Source of the DNA: Saccostrea cucullata
Lineage: Eukaryota
Direction: 5' to 3'
DNA length: 53,816 nt
Assembly (NCBI RefSeq): GCF_032062105.1
Contig: NW_026938165.1
Location: 62,001 to 115,816, forward strand
The notes under the pieces were generated by a model that saw nothing but the letters and a program-made list of their open reading frames with translations, did not search any database and was not told where the DNA came from. This document shows, in pieces, positions 49,204-53,816 of this stretch; positions within the stretch are counted from its first letter, which is position 1, and each line of letters opens with the position of its first letter. Both the position numbers and the translations under genes were made by a program.

Positions 49204-52200
49204 ATGGCAACTCTCTCACAGGTAAATTTTATCTACAGTAGCGAATGTTAAAATAAATTGTTATGCTTGTGCAACGTGTATGTCAATTCAATTCACATTA
49301 TTCTAAATCTTTTTCATATTTAATATTGTAATGTTTTTTTCTGTTTATATATGTAAATATGCTACAGTTGTTTATAAAATAGGAATAGTATTTTTGTTTA
49401 TTTGATAAGCCCTAACCATGGTACCTGATTAGCGCCCTTATCTTGGAAGTCTAATTAGTGTCCTAATTAATATGGCGCTTATCAGATGCTAAATATATTA
49501 AGTGTCTTGACACCTAACAATGGTGCAGAGGCCCTAATACTTGGAGCCGATTGCCCTAATACGTGCCCTAATGATGGAGCCGATTGCCCTAACAGGGTGC
49601 CCTAATGATGGAGCCGATTGCCCTAACAAGTGCCCTAATGATGGAGCCTAACGCCCTAACGAGGTGCCCTAATTCACGTTAGGTGTCAGGCAGGGTATAT
49701 AAGGAGAGAGAGTCAGTGAGCAGATATACTAGAGATACATTGCTTGTACTGGATTGTAAACTACGTTTGGATATTAATAATACACTTGTTGAAACGAACT
49801 TTGTCGTTGTTCTGATGTTAGATCTATAAAGATCTAAAGTTCCTATCTTCTACACGGGATCCACAATATTTTGTGACGCGGGTAACAACAAACAACCCAT
49901 AGAGAGAAAAACGTTACAATTGGTGGCAGCGGTGGGATCCAAAGAAATTATTCTATGTGTAACACAGGAACGAGACAGCACAAAGTTTGAAATGGAGACA
50001 CCCATCGTAAAGAGGAGAATTACGCCTAGAAAGGTAGGACAGTACTTCGACAGTCCGGCTCCTCTGAATGACTCTGGAATAGAGGTCGATGCGGGGTGTA
50101 GAACAAGCTTGCAGCCCACAAGTCGAGTAATGCCAGACAATCCTAACTTTCAGGAGTTCGGGCAAAGCTCGCAGGGCCTTGCTGTTCAAAACGAGTACAA
50201 TCCAAGTCCAAGCTTAAAGAGAATCCTATTTATTTGGGTACTCTTTGCTTTGATAGGATGTTCCCTGATGGTGATGACCTGGATCTATTTTCCAGAGAAT
50301 GAGATCGTGCAGGAATCTAGAGAAAATGCAGTATTTTCTCTAATATCGATAATAAGTATGATATTGCTTGTTACGGTAATCAGCGTATTATGGAAGCATG
50401 GATCCGGTCTGCTGATTGCCAGTAAGAAAAGGGAAATTTCTTTGACACCTAATGATACACCCTATACTGGTCATAGTGCACTTAATGCCCCTACAGGTAC
50501 CTATCAGGAACCTAAGGTTTTTGGGCAATCTGGACGCACTACTCCTCATTTGGGCAATCAGTCCCCTCAGGGACTCGGGTGCAATTTTGAATTTCCTATG
50601 GCTGACGGAACACCTACAAACAGTCCTATGACAACAAATGCTGGTCAACGAACCAATGAATACCCAGTAAGGAGGACTTTCTCAGGGGCCAATGATGATG
50701 TTTGGGATGAGTTCCTACAATATTTTGGAAACATCTCAGAATTAAACTCATGGGGACCTGAGAAATCTCGCAGAGTCTTACTTAGCACCTTGCGAGGGCA
50801 GGCCGAGAGTTATGCCTATGGAATGCCCCTTACTGTACAGAAAGACTATGAGGAACTAAAAGAGAAAATGAATCAAAGATTTGGACATTCTGCAATGAAA
50901 GAAAAATATATTGCAGATGTCAAATTAAGGAGAAGAAAACCTGGCGAGTCCCTGCGAGATTTAGGACAGGCAATCGAAGATCTGTACCGAAGGGCCTATC
51001 CAGGAAATCCAGATTTAGTGGAAGAAAATGCTATACAGTCCTTCCTAGATAAGTGTGGACAATCTGAGGATTTCCGACTTGCAGTGAAACGGACCAGACC
51101 CAGGACACTCCAGGAAGCAGTTCTTAACGCGATGCAAGAAGAGTGCTTGCGGATTGGAGAAAAAGAATTGCCAAAGGAGACAAAACCAGGCTATAGGCCT
51201 GTGTATGAGATTGAAGTTGGGGAATTGAACGATGAAATAGCAGCTGCAGATACTGCCAAACCTCCAAGCGCGGGTGACGGATTCAACAGTATCTATAAAA
51301 ACATAAGAACCCCGAGTACATGTACTAGTGCAGGACCAGGGAGGAGGGGACGCCCTTACAACCCATGGAACCAGAGAGAAAGAGGAGGATTTATATCAAA
51401 TAACAGTTCTCGAGACCATAACTGTGTTGAAAAGAGAACTGTAAGGAATTATATTAACTAAGATGACTGATGCCGCAGGTCAGGTGTCAGTCAACCTTAC
51501 ACGGCCTATAACCTAGGGAGGAAAAGCCTATATTAAAAAAAGTGAAGAGAAAATGTTGAAGAAAAAAAGGCCAGGGAAATCCAAATGTGAAGCTACCAGT
51601 GTGATGAACATTTTTTTTTTATCTAGTGACATTTTATTTGATATAATTTTGTTGTTTTACTTTTTGTCTTTTTATTGATTGTTTGGCTTTTGTGTAATTT
51701 AATTTTACGTATAATTCATGTTCATGTTTTAAATATTAATGACAATGGAAGTCATGTTTCAAAAGGAGGGACCATTGTAATGTTTTTTTCTGTTTATATA
51801 TGTAAATATGCTACAGTTGTTTATAAAATAGGAATAGTATTTTTGTTTATTTGATAAGCCCTAACCATGGTACCTGATTAGCGCCCTTATCTTGGAAGTC
51901 TAATTAGTGTCCTAATTAATATGGCGCTTATCAGATGCTAAATATATTAAGTGTCTTGACACCTAACAATGGTGCAGAGGCCCTAATACTTGGAGCCGAT
52001 TGCCCTAATACGTGCCCTAATGATGGAGCCGATTGCCCTAACAGGGTGCCCTAATGATGGAGCCGATTGCCCTAACAAGTGCCCTAATGATGGAGCCTAA
52101 CGCCCTAACGAGGTGCCCTAATTCACGTTAGGTGTCAGGCAGGGTATATAAGGAGAGAGAGTCAGTGAGCAGATATACTAGAGATACATTGCTTGTACTG

Positions 52201-53816
52201 GATTGTAAACTACGTTTGGATATTAATAATACACTTGTTGAAACGAACTTTGTCGTTGTTCTGATGTTAGATCTATAAAGATCTAAAGTTCCTATCTTCT
52301 ACACGGGATCCACAATATTTTGTGACGCGGGTAACAACAAACAACCCATAGAGAGAAAAACGTTACAATATGATAAAAAATGACACTCATGCCGAATTTC
52401 CTCAGTACTTTAGTGAAAATAGTAGTATTCCCTATATAAAAATTCTGGTGTATGATCAGGATCTTGCATATTTATTTTCCATACTGGTGAACCTTTTAGA
52501 CTTATGTTTACTTCTGTCTGTTCTGGCCCTTCTGGGGCATTTTGTATATGCATTCAAAATGTTCAAGGTTTCATTGAATTTCAAGCAGTTGTAATAGTGC
52601 AACAACCCTTATCTTCTTAAGAATTGTATTGGCTTAAAAATTGAGGTAATGAAAAGCATTGCAAAGCACTGCCTGTCACAGCAAGTGGCACAATTAAAGC
52701 AGGGTTCGTCACCGAGTTCTTCAAAGCAGAGGAGTTTTGATCCAATTAATTTTTTTTCGCAGTTTCCTCTGCGCCCACAATCCATAGTGAAATGCATGTT
52801 GCCAAAAACTAGGTTCTCCTAATAATTAATAAATCATAGCAACAAAAGTTCAACAAAAAATAAAATATATTTATATAACCTTTATTTAATGGATATTGCA
52901 GATAAATACTAGTAAATAGTAGATTAAATGTTCTATAAAGTGAAACACTGTTTAGTTCAGTCTTGGTTTTGATAATGCAACTTCTTTCTTTCCTATATTT
53001 GAAAAAAAAAGCTGCAAAGAGAAGACTCTACAGAAGTGTGAGAGATGTCAAGATTTAAGAAAGAAACATTTAATTTTATTAGTTTTTTTTACAAAAATTT
53101 TTCAGAGAGTGCTTTGTTGTTCATCAAGATATAAAAGTCTTTCAAGGACATTTTGTACATCAGCTCAGCTCTGCAAAAATCTCAGATCCGGTAAAAAGCA
53201 GTATCCAAAGAAAGGAGAACACAACTTTACTTATGAGGAAATCAACCCTCCTTACACAATAGGAGTTAGAAAATCATGGAACTCATGGAACACAAGTAAG
53301 TATTTAAAGAGCTTGCAGTGAGTTTAAAGAGATATCGATGGTTTGTCCAATTAATAATAGTGACTCTTTTCTCATTAGAAAAGAGAAATGAAATTTTTTG
53401 GTATTTAATAAATCATGTAGTACAGTTTTTGAAGAGAAGGAAACAAATGAAACTCATGCAGATGTAGTGTATAATGGAAATTAAGAATACCAAATGAACC
53501 AAATAAAGCATAAATCATATGGGGCAAGTTTGGAGAGTATCATCATGGAATGTTATATACATGTAGAAGAAATTTCTCTTACATAAATTAATATTTCATA
53601 CTTACTGATTGTTTAATATGTATATTTTTCTGTTGTAGCTAATCTTCATGGAGAGACAGGAGCACCACAGATAATATTCGAAGATATTTTCATCCGGAAA
53701 TTCCTCGCAGGAACTTTTCCTTTAGTGTATGAGCCAGGGACTGAAATAATGATCAGAAGGAGACAAAATCTTATTGATATTACCATGGTGACAAAAGAAA
53801 CAACGAGGATGGGAAG
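49204..53816 (+). CDS. MRPS24: Mitochondrial ribosomal protein S24 (uS3m), runs off right end
   Basis: Exons 49204-49221 (MATLSQ, phase 0, tentative), 53106-53295 (..FTYEEINPPYTIGVRKSWNSWNT), 53639->53816 (NLHGE..FEDIFIRKFLAGTFP..IMIRRRQN). Confidence 0.88.
49327..49918 (+). repeat. 5' LTR
   Basis: TG...CA ends; TATA box gggtatataagg ~49693-49704; ~34-bp internal tandem repeats 49531-49675. Confidence 0.95.
49921..49938 (+). promoter_or_regulatory. Primer binding site, tRNA-Leu
   Basis: TGGTGGCAGCGGTGGGAT is complementary to the 3' end (ATCCCACCGCTGCCA-CCA) of animal tRNA-Leu(AAG/TAG) and lies 2 nt after the 5' LTR. Confidence 0.88.
49992..51461 (+). CDS. gag: Gag-like protein (489 aa from first ATG) with two N-terminal hydrophobic helices and a retrotransposon capsid domain; no zinc knuckle
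   Basis: Capsid-like FSGANDDVWDEFLQYF..LNSW..LLSTLRGQAESY..YEELKEKMNQRFG..RRRKPGESLRDLGQAIEDLYRRAYP..F..PRTLQEAV; hydrophobic segments at ~50223-50291 and ~50328-50393. Confidence 0.88.
   Translation: METPIVKRRITPRKVGQYFDSPAPLNDSGIEVDAGCRTSLQPTSRVMPDNPNFQEFGQSSQGLAVQNEYNPSPSLKRILFIWVLFALIGCSLMVMTWIYFPENEIVQESRENAVFSLISIISMILLVTVISVLWKHGSGLLIASKKREISLTPNDTPYTGHSALNAPTGTYQEPKVFGQSGRTTPHLGNQSPQGLGCNFEFPMADGTPTNSPMTTNAGQRTNEYPVRRTFSGANDDVWDEFLQYFGNISELNSWGPEKSRRVLLSTLRGQAESYAYGMPLTVQKDYEELKEKMNQRFGHSAMKEKYIADVKLRRRKPGESLRDLGQAIEDLYRRAYPGNPDLVEENAIQSFLDKCGQSEDFRLAVKRTRPRTLQEAVLNAMQEECLRIGEKELPKETKPGYRPVYEIEVGELNDEIAAADTAKPPSAGDGFNSIYKNIRTPSTCTSAGPGRRGRPYNPWNQRERGGFISNNSSRDHNCVEKRTVRNYIN
51761..51772 (+). 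promoter_or_regulatory. Polypurine tract
   Basis: aaaaggagggac immediately upstream of the 3' LTR. Confidence 0.75.
51776..52367 (+). repeat. 3' LTR
   Basis: Same sequence and length as the 5' LTR (constant offset 2449 at both ends). Confidence 0.95.

Follow-up and report, generated by a model that had tools for sequence, protein, structure and literature searches.

A predicted two-helix membrane anchor in the Gag protein of a lineage of bivalve LTR retrotransposons

Can the capsid protein of an LTR retrotransposon carry its own integral membrane anchor, and if so, is this the accident of a single insertion or the property of a lineage? The question is raised by a locus in the oyster Saccostrea cucullata (contig NW_026938165.1), for which the original prediction, made from the letters of the DNA alone, proposed a gag-only LTR element whose Gag bears two transmembrane-like helices. 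We analyzed this locus within a stretch of 53,816 nucleotides (hereafter the window, to which all positions refer). The observation itself holds: the window contains a 3,041-bp LTR element at 49327-52367, with a single intact ORF encoding a 489-residue Gag with two strongly hydrophobic segments. Its anatomy is as follows:

49323-49326, no strand: target-site duplication, left copy (ATAT), the same four bases flanking both ends of the element.
49327-49918, plus strand: 5' LTR, 592 bp, with TG..CA ends; its terminal ..CGTTACA resembles the LTR ends of relatives.
49542-49673, plus strand: 33-bp tandem repeat, 3.9 copies with 90% matches (Tandem Repeats Finder), in the U3 part of the LTR, repeated at 51991-52122.
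49696-49702, plus strand: TATA-like box, TATATAA, in the LTR, its function being inferred from the sequence.
49921-49938, plus strand: primer-binding site (PBS), the PBS-like TGGTGGCAGCGGTGGGAT starting at 49921.
49992-51461, plus strand: intact gag ORF, 489 codons plus stop.
49992-50222, plus strand: polar leader (residues 1-77), predicted to be disordered (pLDDT below 50), with a conserved METP start and a DSG tripeptide.
50223-50291, plus strand: hydrophobic helix 1 (residues 78-100).
50292-50327, plus strand: short acidic loop (residues 101-112).
50328-50393, plus strand: hydrophobic helix 2 (residues 113-134).
50394-50651, plus strand: Pro/Thr/Gly-rich linker (residues 135-220), predicted to be disordered (pLDDT below 55).
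50652-51167, plus strand: capsid (CA) domain, predicted to be all-helical with two lobes (residues 221-392).
51168-51458, plus strand: basic R/G-rich tail (residues 393-489), predicted to be disordered, with no CCHC knuckle.
51464-51493, plus strand: stem-loop just after the gag stop.
51761-51771, plus strand: polypurine tract (PPT), 4 nt upstream of the 3' LTR.
51776-52367, plus strand: 3' LTR, 592 bp.
52368-52371, no strand: target-site duplication, right copy (ATAT).

The two LTRs are identical, with no mismatches over 592 bp, and the exact repeat run extends over 49325-49920 and 51774-52369. Together with the TG..CA ends, the target-site duplication, the PBS and the PPT, this is the anatomy of an integrase-type LTR retrotransposon, and the identity of the LTRs points to a very recent insertion. 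The same 18 nt of the PBS follow the 5' LTR in five related elements recovered in this study (designated L001, L002, L003, L005 and L014), whereas L004 differs by 1 nt and L015 by 2 nt; no tRNA gene that might identify the primer was found within the window. The gag ORF is the only one of 100 or more codons between the LTRs, no pol-derived sequence follows it, and no other copy or solo LTR of the element is present in the window.

In the encoded protein, Kyte-Doolittle (KD) windows of 19 residues peak at 2.53 and 2.71 for the segments at residues ~78-100 and ~113-134, as against the usual threshold of 1.6. AlphaFold2 models both as helices (75-99 and 104-142), albeit with moderate confidence (pLDDT 72-82), and draws them as a tight helix-turn-helix. 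The downstream domain at residues 221-392 is modeled confidently (pLDDT above 90), and a Foldseek search with it returned the PNMA2 capsid as the closest match (8uyo, E 7.7e-5, TM-score to target 0.52), followed by Arc, dArc1/2 and MLV CA, indicating a retroviral-type two-lobed capsid fold. By sequence the matches are only weak: identity to these structural matches is only 13-20%, the Pfam Retrotrans_gag model is matched weakly and in just 5 of 65 relatives, and the window protein itself has only a weak hit to DUF1759 (E 0.007). This last hit first suggested a BEL/Pao affiliation, which we rejected once autonomous relatives were seen to possess pol families of the Ty3/gypsy type. Pfam, PDB sequence and profile searches gave no significant match for the N-terminal module, including none to any matrix (MA) family.

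We next asked whether the hairpin is peculiar to this copy. The original prediction regarded it as a fusion maintained in a freshly inserted copy for its transposition, and in this form its interpretation is only partly supported. It was right that the element is a recently inserted gag-only one, that the helices have basic flanks and an acidic loop between them, that the capsid is of the Ty3/gypsy type and that the tail lacks a CCHC knuckle; however, the hairpin is ancestral to a lineage of bivalve Ty3/gypsy elements, with Mytilus and Magallana being the only hosts identified by name among the homologues. Of 125 homologues with at least 120 residues upstream of the capsid, 88 have two hydrophobic segments, and among those with at least 35% HSP identity the figure is 77 of 94. 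The hairpin is alignable almost without gaps in 65 homologues. It also occurs in autonomous elements of 8-9.5 kb in Mytilus and in metagenome contigs: L001, L002 and L005 (Mytilus edulis) carry it upstream of a pol with protease, RT, RNase H and integrase in that order. These have the Pfam families RT_RNaseH, Integrase_H2C2 and Integrase_p58_C, with no chromodomain detected, which is consistent with Ty3/gypsy. The window element, lacking pol, belongs to this group by descent, as a non-autonomous derivative. A one-off capture of a host membrane-protein exon by this particular element has nothing beyond the unusual architecture to recommend it, is contradicted by the above distribution, and is very unlikely; single-sequence and profile searches with the N-terminal module found only members or fragments of the same family and no independent host protein. 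Likewise, the absence of the CCHC knuckle (no C-x2-C-x4-H-x4-C motif in the window protein) is a trait of its whole subclade, including autonomous members, whereas the knuckle is present in 38 of 64 aligned relatives, all from the more distant subclade.

The descent from a gag-pol ancestor is also recorded in the stem-loop just after the gag stop. It has a free energy of -18.5 kcal/mol (z -4.45), and is homologous to the frameshift-stimulating hairpin of autonomous relatives, with ten conserved pairs, three of them with compensatory changes, across six sequences. In the autonomous relatives this stem-loop follows a GTTAAAC or TTTAAAC heptamer, with pol in the -1 frame (L003 excepted) and a 19-nt gag/pol overlap in L001, L002 and L005. 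Gag-only derivatives recur in at least three genomes. L014 in M. edulis is 92-99% identical to the autonomous L005 over the 5' UTR to early capsid and has the same PBS, and both forms co-occur in this species; the 5' half and the capsid half of its gag have different histories relative to L005, revealing a mosaic history. L015, in another assembly, has LTRs that share a 490-nt exact run, and its protein cluster has 16 members.

Several features indicate that the hairpin is under constraint. Its length is 57-69 residues (median 61), as against 37-117 for the leader and 20-154 for the linker, while the capsid shows a mean pairwise identity of 57% in the family. The loop is 8-18 residues long (median 12). 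Conserved positions include Trp at the columns of residues 75 and 82 (the latter in 60 of 65 sequences), an aromatic cluster at 97-100, Pro at 101 (54 of 65), Glu at 111 (48 of 65), Ser/Thr at 127 (53 of 65) and Lys/Arg at 131 (56 of 65), where the window copy has Ser. The window copy departs from the family at three or four of the most conserved hairpin columns (75, 78, 127 and 131), and may not be fully typical. Whether the hydrophobic region evolves neutrally had been set beforehand as a test of the proposal: in the four pairs of family members for which dS could be estimated, dN/dS of the hairpin is about 0.13-0.31, although dS is close to saturation in these pairs and the ratios are rough. 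Exact look-ups of the window protein in the sequence collections found no match, so these values pertain to the family without same-genome sister copies of the window element. The close pair L005/L014 has only 1-3 changes in the hairpin (1 amino-acid and 2 synonymous in one comparison, 1 synonymous in another with slightly different bounds), which gives it no power for dN/dS, and a metagenome scan yielded only 8 loci, too few and too distant for selection tests.

With respect to topology, the flanks are more positive than the loop in 55 of 65 sequences, and the window copy reads +1 before helix 1, -3 in the loop and +2 after helix 2. This bias is modest at the family level, with a mean net loop charge of about 0 and 10 of 65 sequences that do not fit, and like hydropathy and helix prediction it is indirect evidence. 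One might consider that the helices do not cross a bilayer but form a monotopic (re-entrant) hairpin in one leaflet, for instance on ER or lipid-droplet surfaces, or a hydrophobic oligomerization core, with Gag being peripherally attached or self-associated. The very short loop with a near-invariant Pro at the turn, the hydrophobic residues at the columns of 105-106, the tight turn in the model, and the basic residue at 131 that shortens helix 2 to about 18 residues in most family members are compatible with this. On the other hand, both segments are long and hydrophobic enough to span a bilayer (KD 2.5-2.7; ΔG-type hydrophobicity sums are only indicative), aromatic residues cluster at both ends of helix 1 as at membrane interfaces, and the loop carries conserved charged and polar residues (Thr/Ser at 109, Lys/Arg/Gln at 110 and Glu at 111) that would be costly to bury. 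We hence consider this alternative possible but unlikely.

It is also conceivable that the anchored form is a minor or regulatory isoform, with the particle-building capsid being a soluble product of a downstream start, splicing or cleavage, reminiscent of the two Gag forms of murine gammaretroviruses. An in-frame Met at 50598 does lie just before the capsid domain and is kept by the close Magallana relatives, and the differing histories of the two halves of gag in L014 could be read in this light. However, the start at 49992 has the better context (G at -3 and G at +4, as against C at -3 for 50598), 15 ATGs in all frames lie between the two, relatives share the METP start, the internal Met is not conserved in more distant members, and a single uninterrupted ORF is seen throughout the family. 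Thus, translation most likely starts upstream of the helices, and the isoform reading appears doubtful; cleavage in the linker, for its part, is compatible with the explanation we favor below.

A further alternative is that the gag-only copies are host-serving or interfering genes, such as a domesticated capsid or a Gag-derived restriction factor, rather than mobile parasites of an autonomous element. Many intact gag-only genes, seen in gene tables that do not reveal their LTR status, sit next to host genes in one assembly with no long pol ORF called beside them; Gag-derived restriction factors occur in other systems, and Ty1 CA-CTD restriction factors appear among the weak fold hits. Against this, the window copy, L014 and L015 each have paired LTRs with a PBS beside the 5' LTR, the window copy also has a target-site duplication and a PPT, a PPT-proximal stretch was matched for L014 and a purine-rich tract read for L015. 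The identical LTRs of the window copy and the 490-nt exact run of L015 are the signature of recent retrotransposition and not of a fixed host gene. We regard this possibility as improbable.

Taken together, we interpret the element, with reasonable though not full confidence, as a recently transposed gag-only derivative of a bivalve Ty3/gypsy lineage in which Gag begins with a lineage-specific membrane module, namely a disordered polar leader followed by a two-helix hydrophobic hairpin. The anatomy of the element, its intact ORF, the capsid fold, the presence of the hairpin in autonomous and gag-only relatives and the purifying constraint on it rest on the analyses presented here, whereas membrane insertion, topology and all that might follow from them are inferred. 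We posit that helix 1 acts as a signal-anchor and helix 2 as a stop-transfer, so that Gag would be inserted co-translationally into the ER or another cellular membrane, with only the ~12-residue loop on the far side and both the leader and the linker-capsid-tail facing the cytosol. In this view, the hairpin would do the job of a retroviral matrix domain, but as an integral rather than a peripheral anchor, concentrating Gag, and probably its own mRNA, on a membrane surface where particles assemble. The partner's protease might then release the capsid from the anchor within the variable linker. Having no pol, the element must in this view rely on RT and integrase from an autonomous relative in the same genome; none is visible in the window, but the element shares its PBS and LTR-end motifs with the autonomous relatives recovered from other genomes. 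The suggestions of the original prediction that a tethered capsid could bud into vesicles, transfer RNA independently of env or hijack the particles of an autonomous partner likewise remain inferences.

Individual aspects of this system find parallels elsewhere. The RLG_Quinta/RLG_Cereba pair of wheat (PMC11302176) documents a gag-only Ty3/gypsy element with LTRs, PBS and PPT that derives from a gag-pol ancestor, shares PBS and LTR-end motifs with autonomous relatives and shows signs of sequence exchange between the two forms, all as in the present family; the present element differs in its animal lineage, its Gag with a predicted membrane hairpin, and in that its own partner was not seen in the window. 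The retroviral MA domain is similarly an N-terminal module preceding a flexible linker and the capsid, which brings Gag to a membrane, as proposed here; but it binds peripherally via a myristate on Gly2 and/or a basic patch, whereas here residue 2 is Glu, the leader is predicted to be disordered and attachment would be by two integral helices. The glycosylated Gag of murine gammaretroviruses is an integral membrane protein, but it is an alternative isoform from an upstream start with one span that places the capsid part on the far side; in the present case, compared by architecture rather than by sequence, the anchor is in the only ORF, would have two spans and should leave the capsid in the cytosol. 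Ty1 Gag of yeast provides a precedent for the SRP-dependent, co-translational targeting of a retrotransposon Gag and its mRNA to the ER, which nucleates assembly sites (PMC3945221), though Ty1 is a Ty1/copia element whose Gag has no hydrophobic hairpin and is reported to be translocated and returned rather than anchored. The capsids of Ty3/gypsy origin, PNMA2, Arc, dArc1/2 and Ty3, are the best structural matches to our capsid domain, but these are soluble proteins, and PNMA2 and Arc are domesticated genes without LTRs. Finally, env-carrying Ty3/gypsy elements (errantiviruses), found also in molluscs, engage membranes through a separate env gene with a large ectodomain (PMC13524379), and the paper describing them does not mention membrane spans in Gag. 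By contrast, the extramembrane loop here is of just 12 residues, and the autonomous relatives have no env ORF and no hydrophobic segment in pol. We found no published description of membrane spans in a retrotransposon Gag, though our searches of open-access papers matched words rather than meaning, making this absence of evidence. More speculatively, and less likely than not by a wide margin, a whole lineage of env-less Ty3/gypsy elements in bivalves might have replaced peripheral membrane binding with an integral two-span Gag anchor, using it to assemble on, and leave cells within, host membranes. This would give retrotransposons a route between cells, or even between individuals, without any envelope gene, with the abundant gag-only derivatives riding in the same particles.

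Gag proteins of retroviruses and LTR retrotransposons are known as soluble or peripherally membrane-bound proteins, and a conserved, selected, integral-membrane Gag would be a third solution to where and how particles assemble. The recurrence of gag-only derivatives in several genomes, with identical LTRs in the window copy, also gives an animal counterpart to the autonomous/non-autonomous Gag-sharing pairs of plants. Marine bivalves, a group with known horizontal spread of retroelements, would therefore be a natural system in which to look. If the anchor functions as we infer, it would also show that an MA-like function can arise independently in an env-less retrotransposon, and it bears on how retroelements acquire membrane association on the way to virus-like behavior.

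A direct repeat with an offset of 2,449 bp delimits an LTR element of 3,041 bp in total, the components of which, along with smaller features within it, are as follows (positions of the window):
49327-49918, 5' LTR, 592 bp, beginning TG and ending CA
51776-52367, 3' LTR, 592 bp, with no mismatch to the 5' LTR
49542-49673 and 51991-52122, a 33-bp tandem repeat (3.9 copies, 90% matches) in the U3 part of each LTR
49696-49702, a TATATAA downstream of the first of these repeats
49815-49829 and 49955-49990, two short upstream ORFs (4 and 11 codons) in the presumed 5' UTR, the second ending one base before the gag ATG
49992-51461, + strand, the gag ORF, 489 aa from its first ATG
50070-50078 (aa 27-29), an Asp-Ser-Gly tripeptide in the leader of Gag
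51464-51493, a stem-loop following gag

The four bases ATAT flank both ends of the element as a target-site duplication, an 18-nt PBS-like sequence starts two bases after the 5' LTR, and an 11-nt purine tract lies four bases before the 3' LTR. The tandem repeat in U3 may be an enhancer-like array. The gag ORF is the only one of any size between the LTRs, no stretch after it resembles pol, and the window holds neither a second copy nor a solo LTR. The original prediction was correct in both the position and the description of a gag-only element, and the identical LTRs indicate a very recent insertion. The rest of the window has almost no long ORFs and is 28-36% G+C; one ORF of 232 aa (30842-31540, + strand), which is presumably an exon of a host gene, has a match to the calcineurin-like phosphoesterase (Metallophos) family at E 2.9e-8.

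Kyte-Doolittle hydropathy of the Gag protein in 19-residue windows peaks at 2.53 and 2.71 for aa ~78-100 and ~113-134, respectively, far above the usual threshold of 1.6. An AlphaFold2 model built on a 65-sequence alignment predicts helices at aa 75-99 and 104-142 with a pLDDT of 72-82, disorder for aa 1-71, 143-220 and 411-489, and a confident all-helical domain at aa 221-392 (pLDDT above 90). Against solved structures, this modeled domain matches the PNMA2 capsid (E 7.7e-5), followed by those of Arc, dArc1/2 and the MLV capsid, whereas against predicted viral structures it matches a fungal metavirus ORF1, caulimovirid coat proteins and retroviral Gags. Sequence models are only weak in comparison: DUF1759 was recovered at E 0.007 in the window protein and Retrotrans_gag in 5 of the 65 relatives. 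The tail is R/G-rich and has no CCHC motif. As residue 2 is Glu, N-terminal myristoylation in the retroviral manner is excluded. More generally, the hairpin-bearing Gags split into two groups, of which one has a single CCHC knuckle, while the other, which includes the window copy and the Mytilus autonomous elements, has an R/G-rich tail instead. In the latter group, the Gags often end in Leu-Asn just before the frameshift site.

The interpretation in the original prediction was partly supported: the two-helix module is not a one-off of this copy but a family trait. A protein search returned 126 homologs, of which those with a named source are all from Mytilus species and Magallana gigas, and an exhaustive search of representative sequences returned 3,756 hits at E up to 0.001, most of them through the capsid domain. 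Counting hydrophobic segments among hits with at least 120 residues upstream of the capsid indicates that the anchor marks a sub-lineage of a larger Gag family, whose outgroups mostly lack it.

Table. Hydrophobic segments in hits with at least 120 residues upstream of the capsid, grouped by HSP identity.
35% or more: two segments, 77; one, 10; none, 7; total, 94
Below 35%: two segments, 11; one, 3; none, 17; total, 31

Autonomous elements carry the anchor as well. First, the element L001 has a 581-aa Gag with the hairpin, followed by an 1,804-aa pol with RVT_1, RT_RNaseH, Integrase_H2C2, rve and Integrase_p58_C domains. Second, the element L002 has the same layout, plus aspartic-protease matches that fall below or just under the Pfam cut-offs, with its pol called as two ORFs. 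Third, L005 from the Mytilus edulis genome is a ~9.5-kb element with ~725-bp LTRs that are 96-100% identical across the aligned segments, a 542-aa Gag with the hairpin and an 1,801-aa pol ORF. Pol of these relatives (L001 3441-8855; L005 11653-17058) is about 1,800 aa and extends ~470 residues beyond the integrase C-terminal domain (pol aa ~1340-1804 in L001), with only a sub-threshold C2H2 zinc-finger match in this extension. It has no chromodomain and no hydrophobic segment, and there is no env ORF. Judged by domain content, the order and families are those of Ty3/gypsy elements.

In the 65-sequence alignment, the hairpin segment (aa 74-134 of the window protein) is 57-69 residues long, with a median of 61, and occupancy stays at 64-65 of 65 sequences from aa 74 to about aa 139. 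In contrast, the leader ranges from 37 to 117 residues and the linker from 20 to 154. Specific columns are conserved within the hairpin, and the aromatic residues at both ends of helix 1 are what one expects at membrane interfaces.

Table. Conserved columns of the hairpin, numbered on the window protein, with the number of sequences out of 65.
aa 75: Trp, 59
aa 78: Phe, 50
aa 82: Trp, 60
aa 97-100: cluster of Tyr/Trp, Tyr, Phe
aa 101: Pro, 54
aa 111: Glu, 48
aa 127: Ser/Thr, 53
aa 131: Lys/Arg, 56

The window copy is itself atypical at the columns of aa 75, 78, 127 and 131. Synonymous sites are saturated in most pairs of the seven genes compared at the DNA level; however, in the four pairs for which dS could be estimated (1.2-1.65), the hairpin has a dN/dS of 0.13-0.31. 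Hairpin dN is 0.20-0.42 in these pairs, while capsid dN across all pairs is 0.05-0.18. Thus, although the ratios are rough because dS is near saturation, the hairpin is under purifying selection, albeit weaker than that on the capsid.

In the window protein the net charge is +1 before helix 1, -3 in the loop and +2 after helix 2, and in 55 of 65 family members the flanks are more positive than the loop. By the positive-inside rule, this favors an inferred topology with both termini in the cytosol. One alternative raised in the original prediction, namely that translation starts downstream of the helices, was examined by comparing initiation contexts. The ATG at 49992 has G at -3 and G at +4, the two short upstream ORFs have weak contexts, and fifteen ATGs in all frames lie between 49992 and the in-frame Met at 50598, whose -3 base is C. 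Further, relatives, including autonomous ones, start with the same METP residues and share the Asp-Ser-Gly tripeptide, which is invariant in the otherwise poorly conserved, disordered leader of 11 close relatives. This tripeptide occurs in the leader of 25 of the 65 family members, and in 18 of the 65 a Ser or Thr follows 2-4 residues later. Translation from downstream of the helices is therefore unlikely as the main mode, although, in the absence of RNA or protein data, additional isoforms cannot be excluded.

The origin of the gag-only form is suggested by the gag/pol junction of the autonomous relatives (L001 3405-3456, L002 1764-1815, L003 1709-1760, L004 1938-1989 and L005 11617-11668). 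Here, gag ends with GTTAAAC or TTTAAAC followed by TAG. Pol lies in the -1 frame in L001, L002, L004 and L005, with a gag/pol overlap of 19 nt in L001, L002 and L005 and of 70 nt in L004, whereas in L003 the downstream ORF is in the gag frame and does not overlap. A stem-loop of 10 bp with an 8-nt loop follows a few bases later in most of the loci and shows three compensatory pairs among six sequences. This is the standard layout of a -1 ribosomal frameshift signal, comprising an X XXY YYZ heptamer, a spacer and a structure. The window element keeps the stem-loop at the homologous place (51464-51493; -18.5 kcal/mol, z -4.45), but the heptamer there does not fit the pattern and no pol follows. 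So, it descends from a gag-pol element that lost the whole of pol (one gene missing). The retention of the stem-loop in the window copy may simply reflect recent derivation, or the structure may have a second role in the RNA; the Mytilus gag-only element L014 has lost it. The PBS is identical in the window element, L001, L002, L003, L005 and L014, and differs by 1 nt in L004 and by 2 nt in L015, a gag-only element from another assembly. The LTR ends are similar too. These are the criteria used to pair non-autonomous with autonomous LTR elements in wheat (PMC11302176).

Gag-only elements recur in other genomes. In M. edulis, L014 has paired LTRs about 3.1 kb apart with only a 528-aa hairpin-bearing gag between them. 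It is 86% identical in DNA to the autonomous L005 over PBS plus gag, and again near the PPT, while the LTRs differ. The relationship between these two elements of the same genome (L014 5207-6940 against L005 9932-11680) is a mosaic: identity is 92-99% over the 5' UTR, leader, hairpin, linker and early capsid, falls to 83-85% and then to 52-61% in the tail, with a dS of 0.05-0.1 in the 5' half against 0.7-1.4 in the capsid and tail. This suggests recombination between the two forms and is what template switching between co-packaged RNAs would give, though we only infer such a process. L015 has LTRs sharing a 490-nt exact run with only a 437-aa hairpin-bearing gag between them, and its 90% protein cluster has 16 members on different megabase contigs. 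In a further assembly, four hairpin-bearing gag genes with a CCHC knuckle have no long pol ORF beside them; on this evidence from gene content alone, they are putative further instances.

While the anatomy of the element, the family-wide distribution and constraint of the hydrophobic segments, the features of the gag/pol junction and the recurrence of gag-only forms are shown by the analysis, membrane insertion, its topology and the mechanism that follows are inferred. We posit that helix 1 would act as a signal-anchor and helix 2 as a stop-transfer, which would put Gag into the ER or a downstream membrane with the leader and the capsid-tail in the cytosol. The membrane would then be the assembly platform, a role played in retroviruses by the peripheral matrix domain. 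Co-translational targeting would also bring the element's own RNA to that site, as reported for Ty1 (PMC3945221). In this view, the variable linker is the natural place for cleavage by a partner's protease, the R/G-rich tail would replace the zinc knuckle in RNA binding, and the gag-only element would supply its own Gag and borrow RT and integrase. That particles additionally bud into a lumen or leave the cell is possible but, on present evidence, unlikely.

Several facets of this system have precedents. Gag-only non-autonomous LTR elements are known, such as RLG_Quinta and RLG_Sabrina (PMC11302176), and membrane-engaging Ty3/gypsy elements are known through their env genes (PMC13524379). Murine gammaretroviruses, in turn, have an integral-membrane Gag isoform. 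However, in keyword searches confined to open-access text, we found no description of a retrotransposon lineage whose only Gag is an integral two-span membrane protein, as predicted here. The element as such is an ordinary non-autonomous Ty3/gypsy derivative, and it is the predicted architecture of its Gag, shared by the lineage, that is the unusual part.
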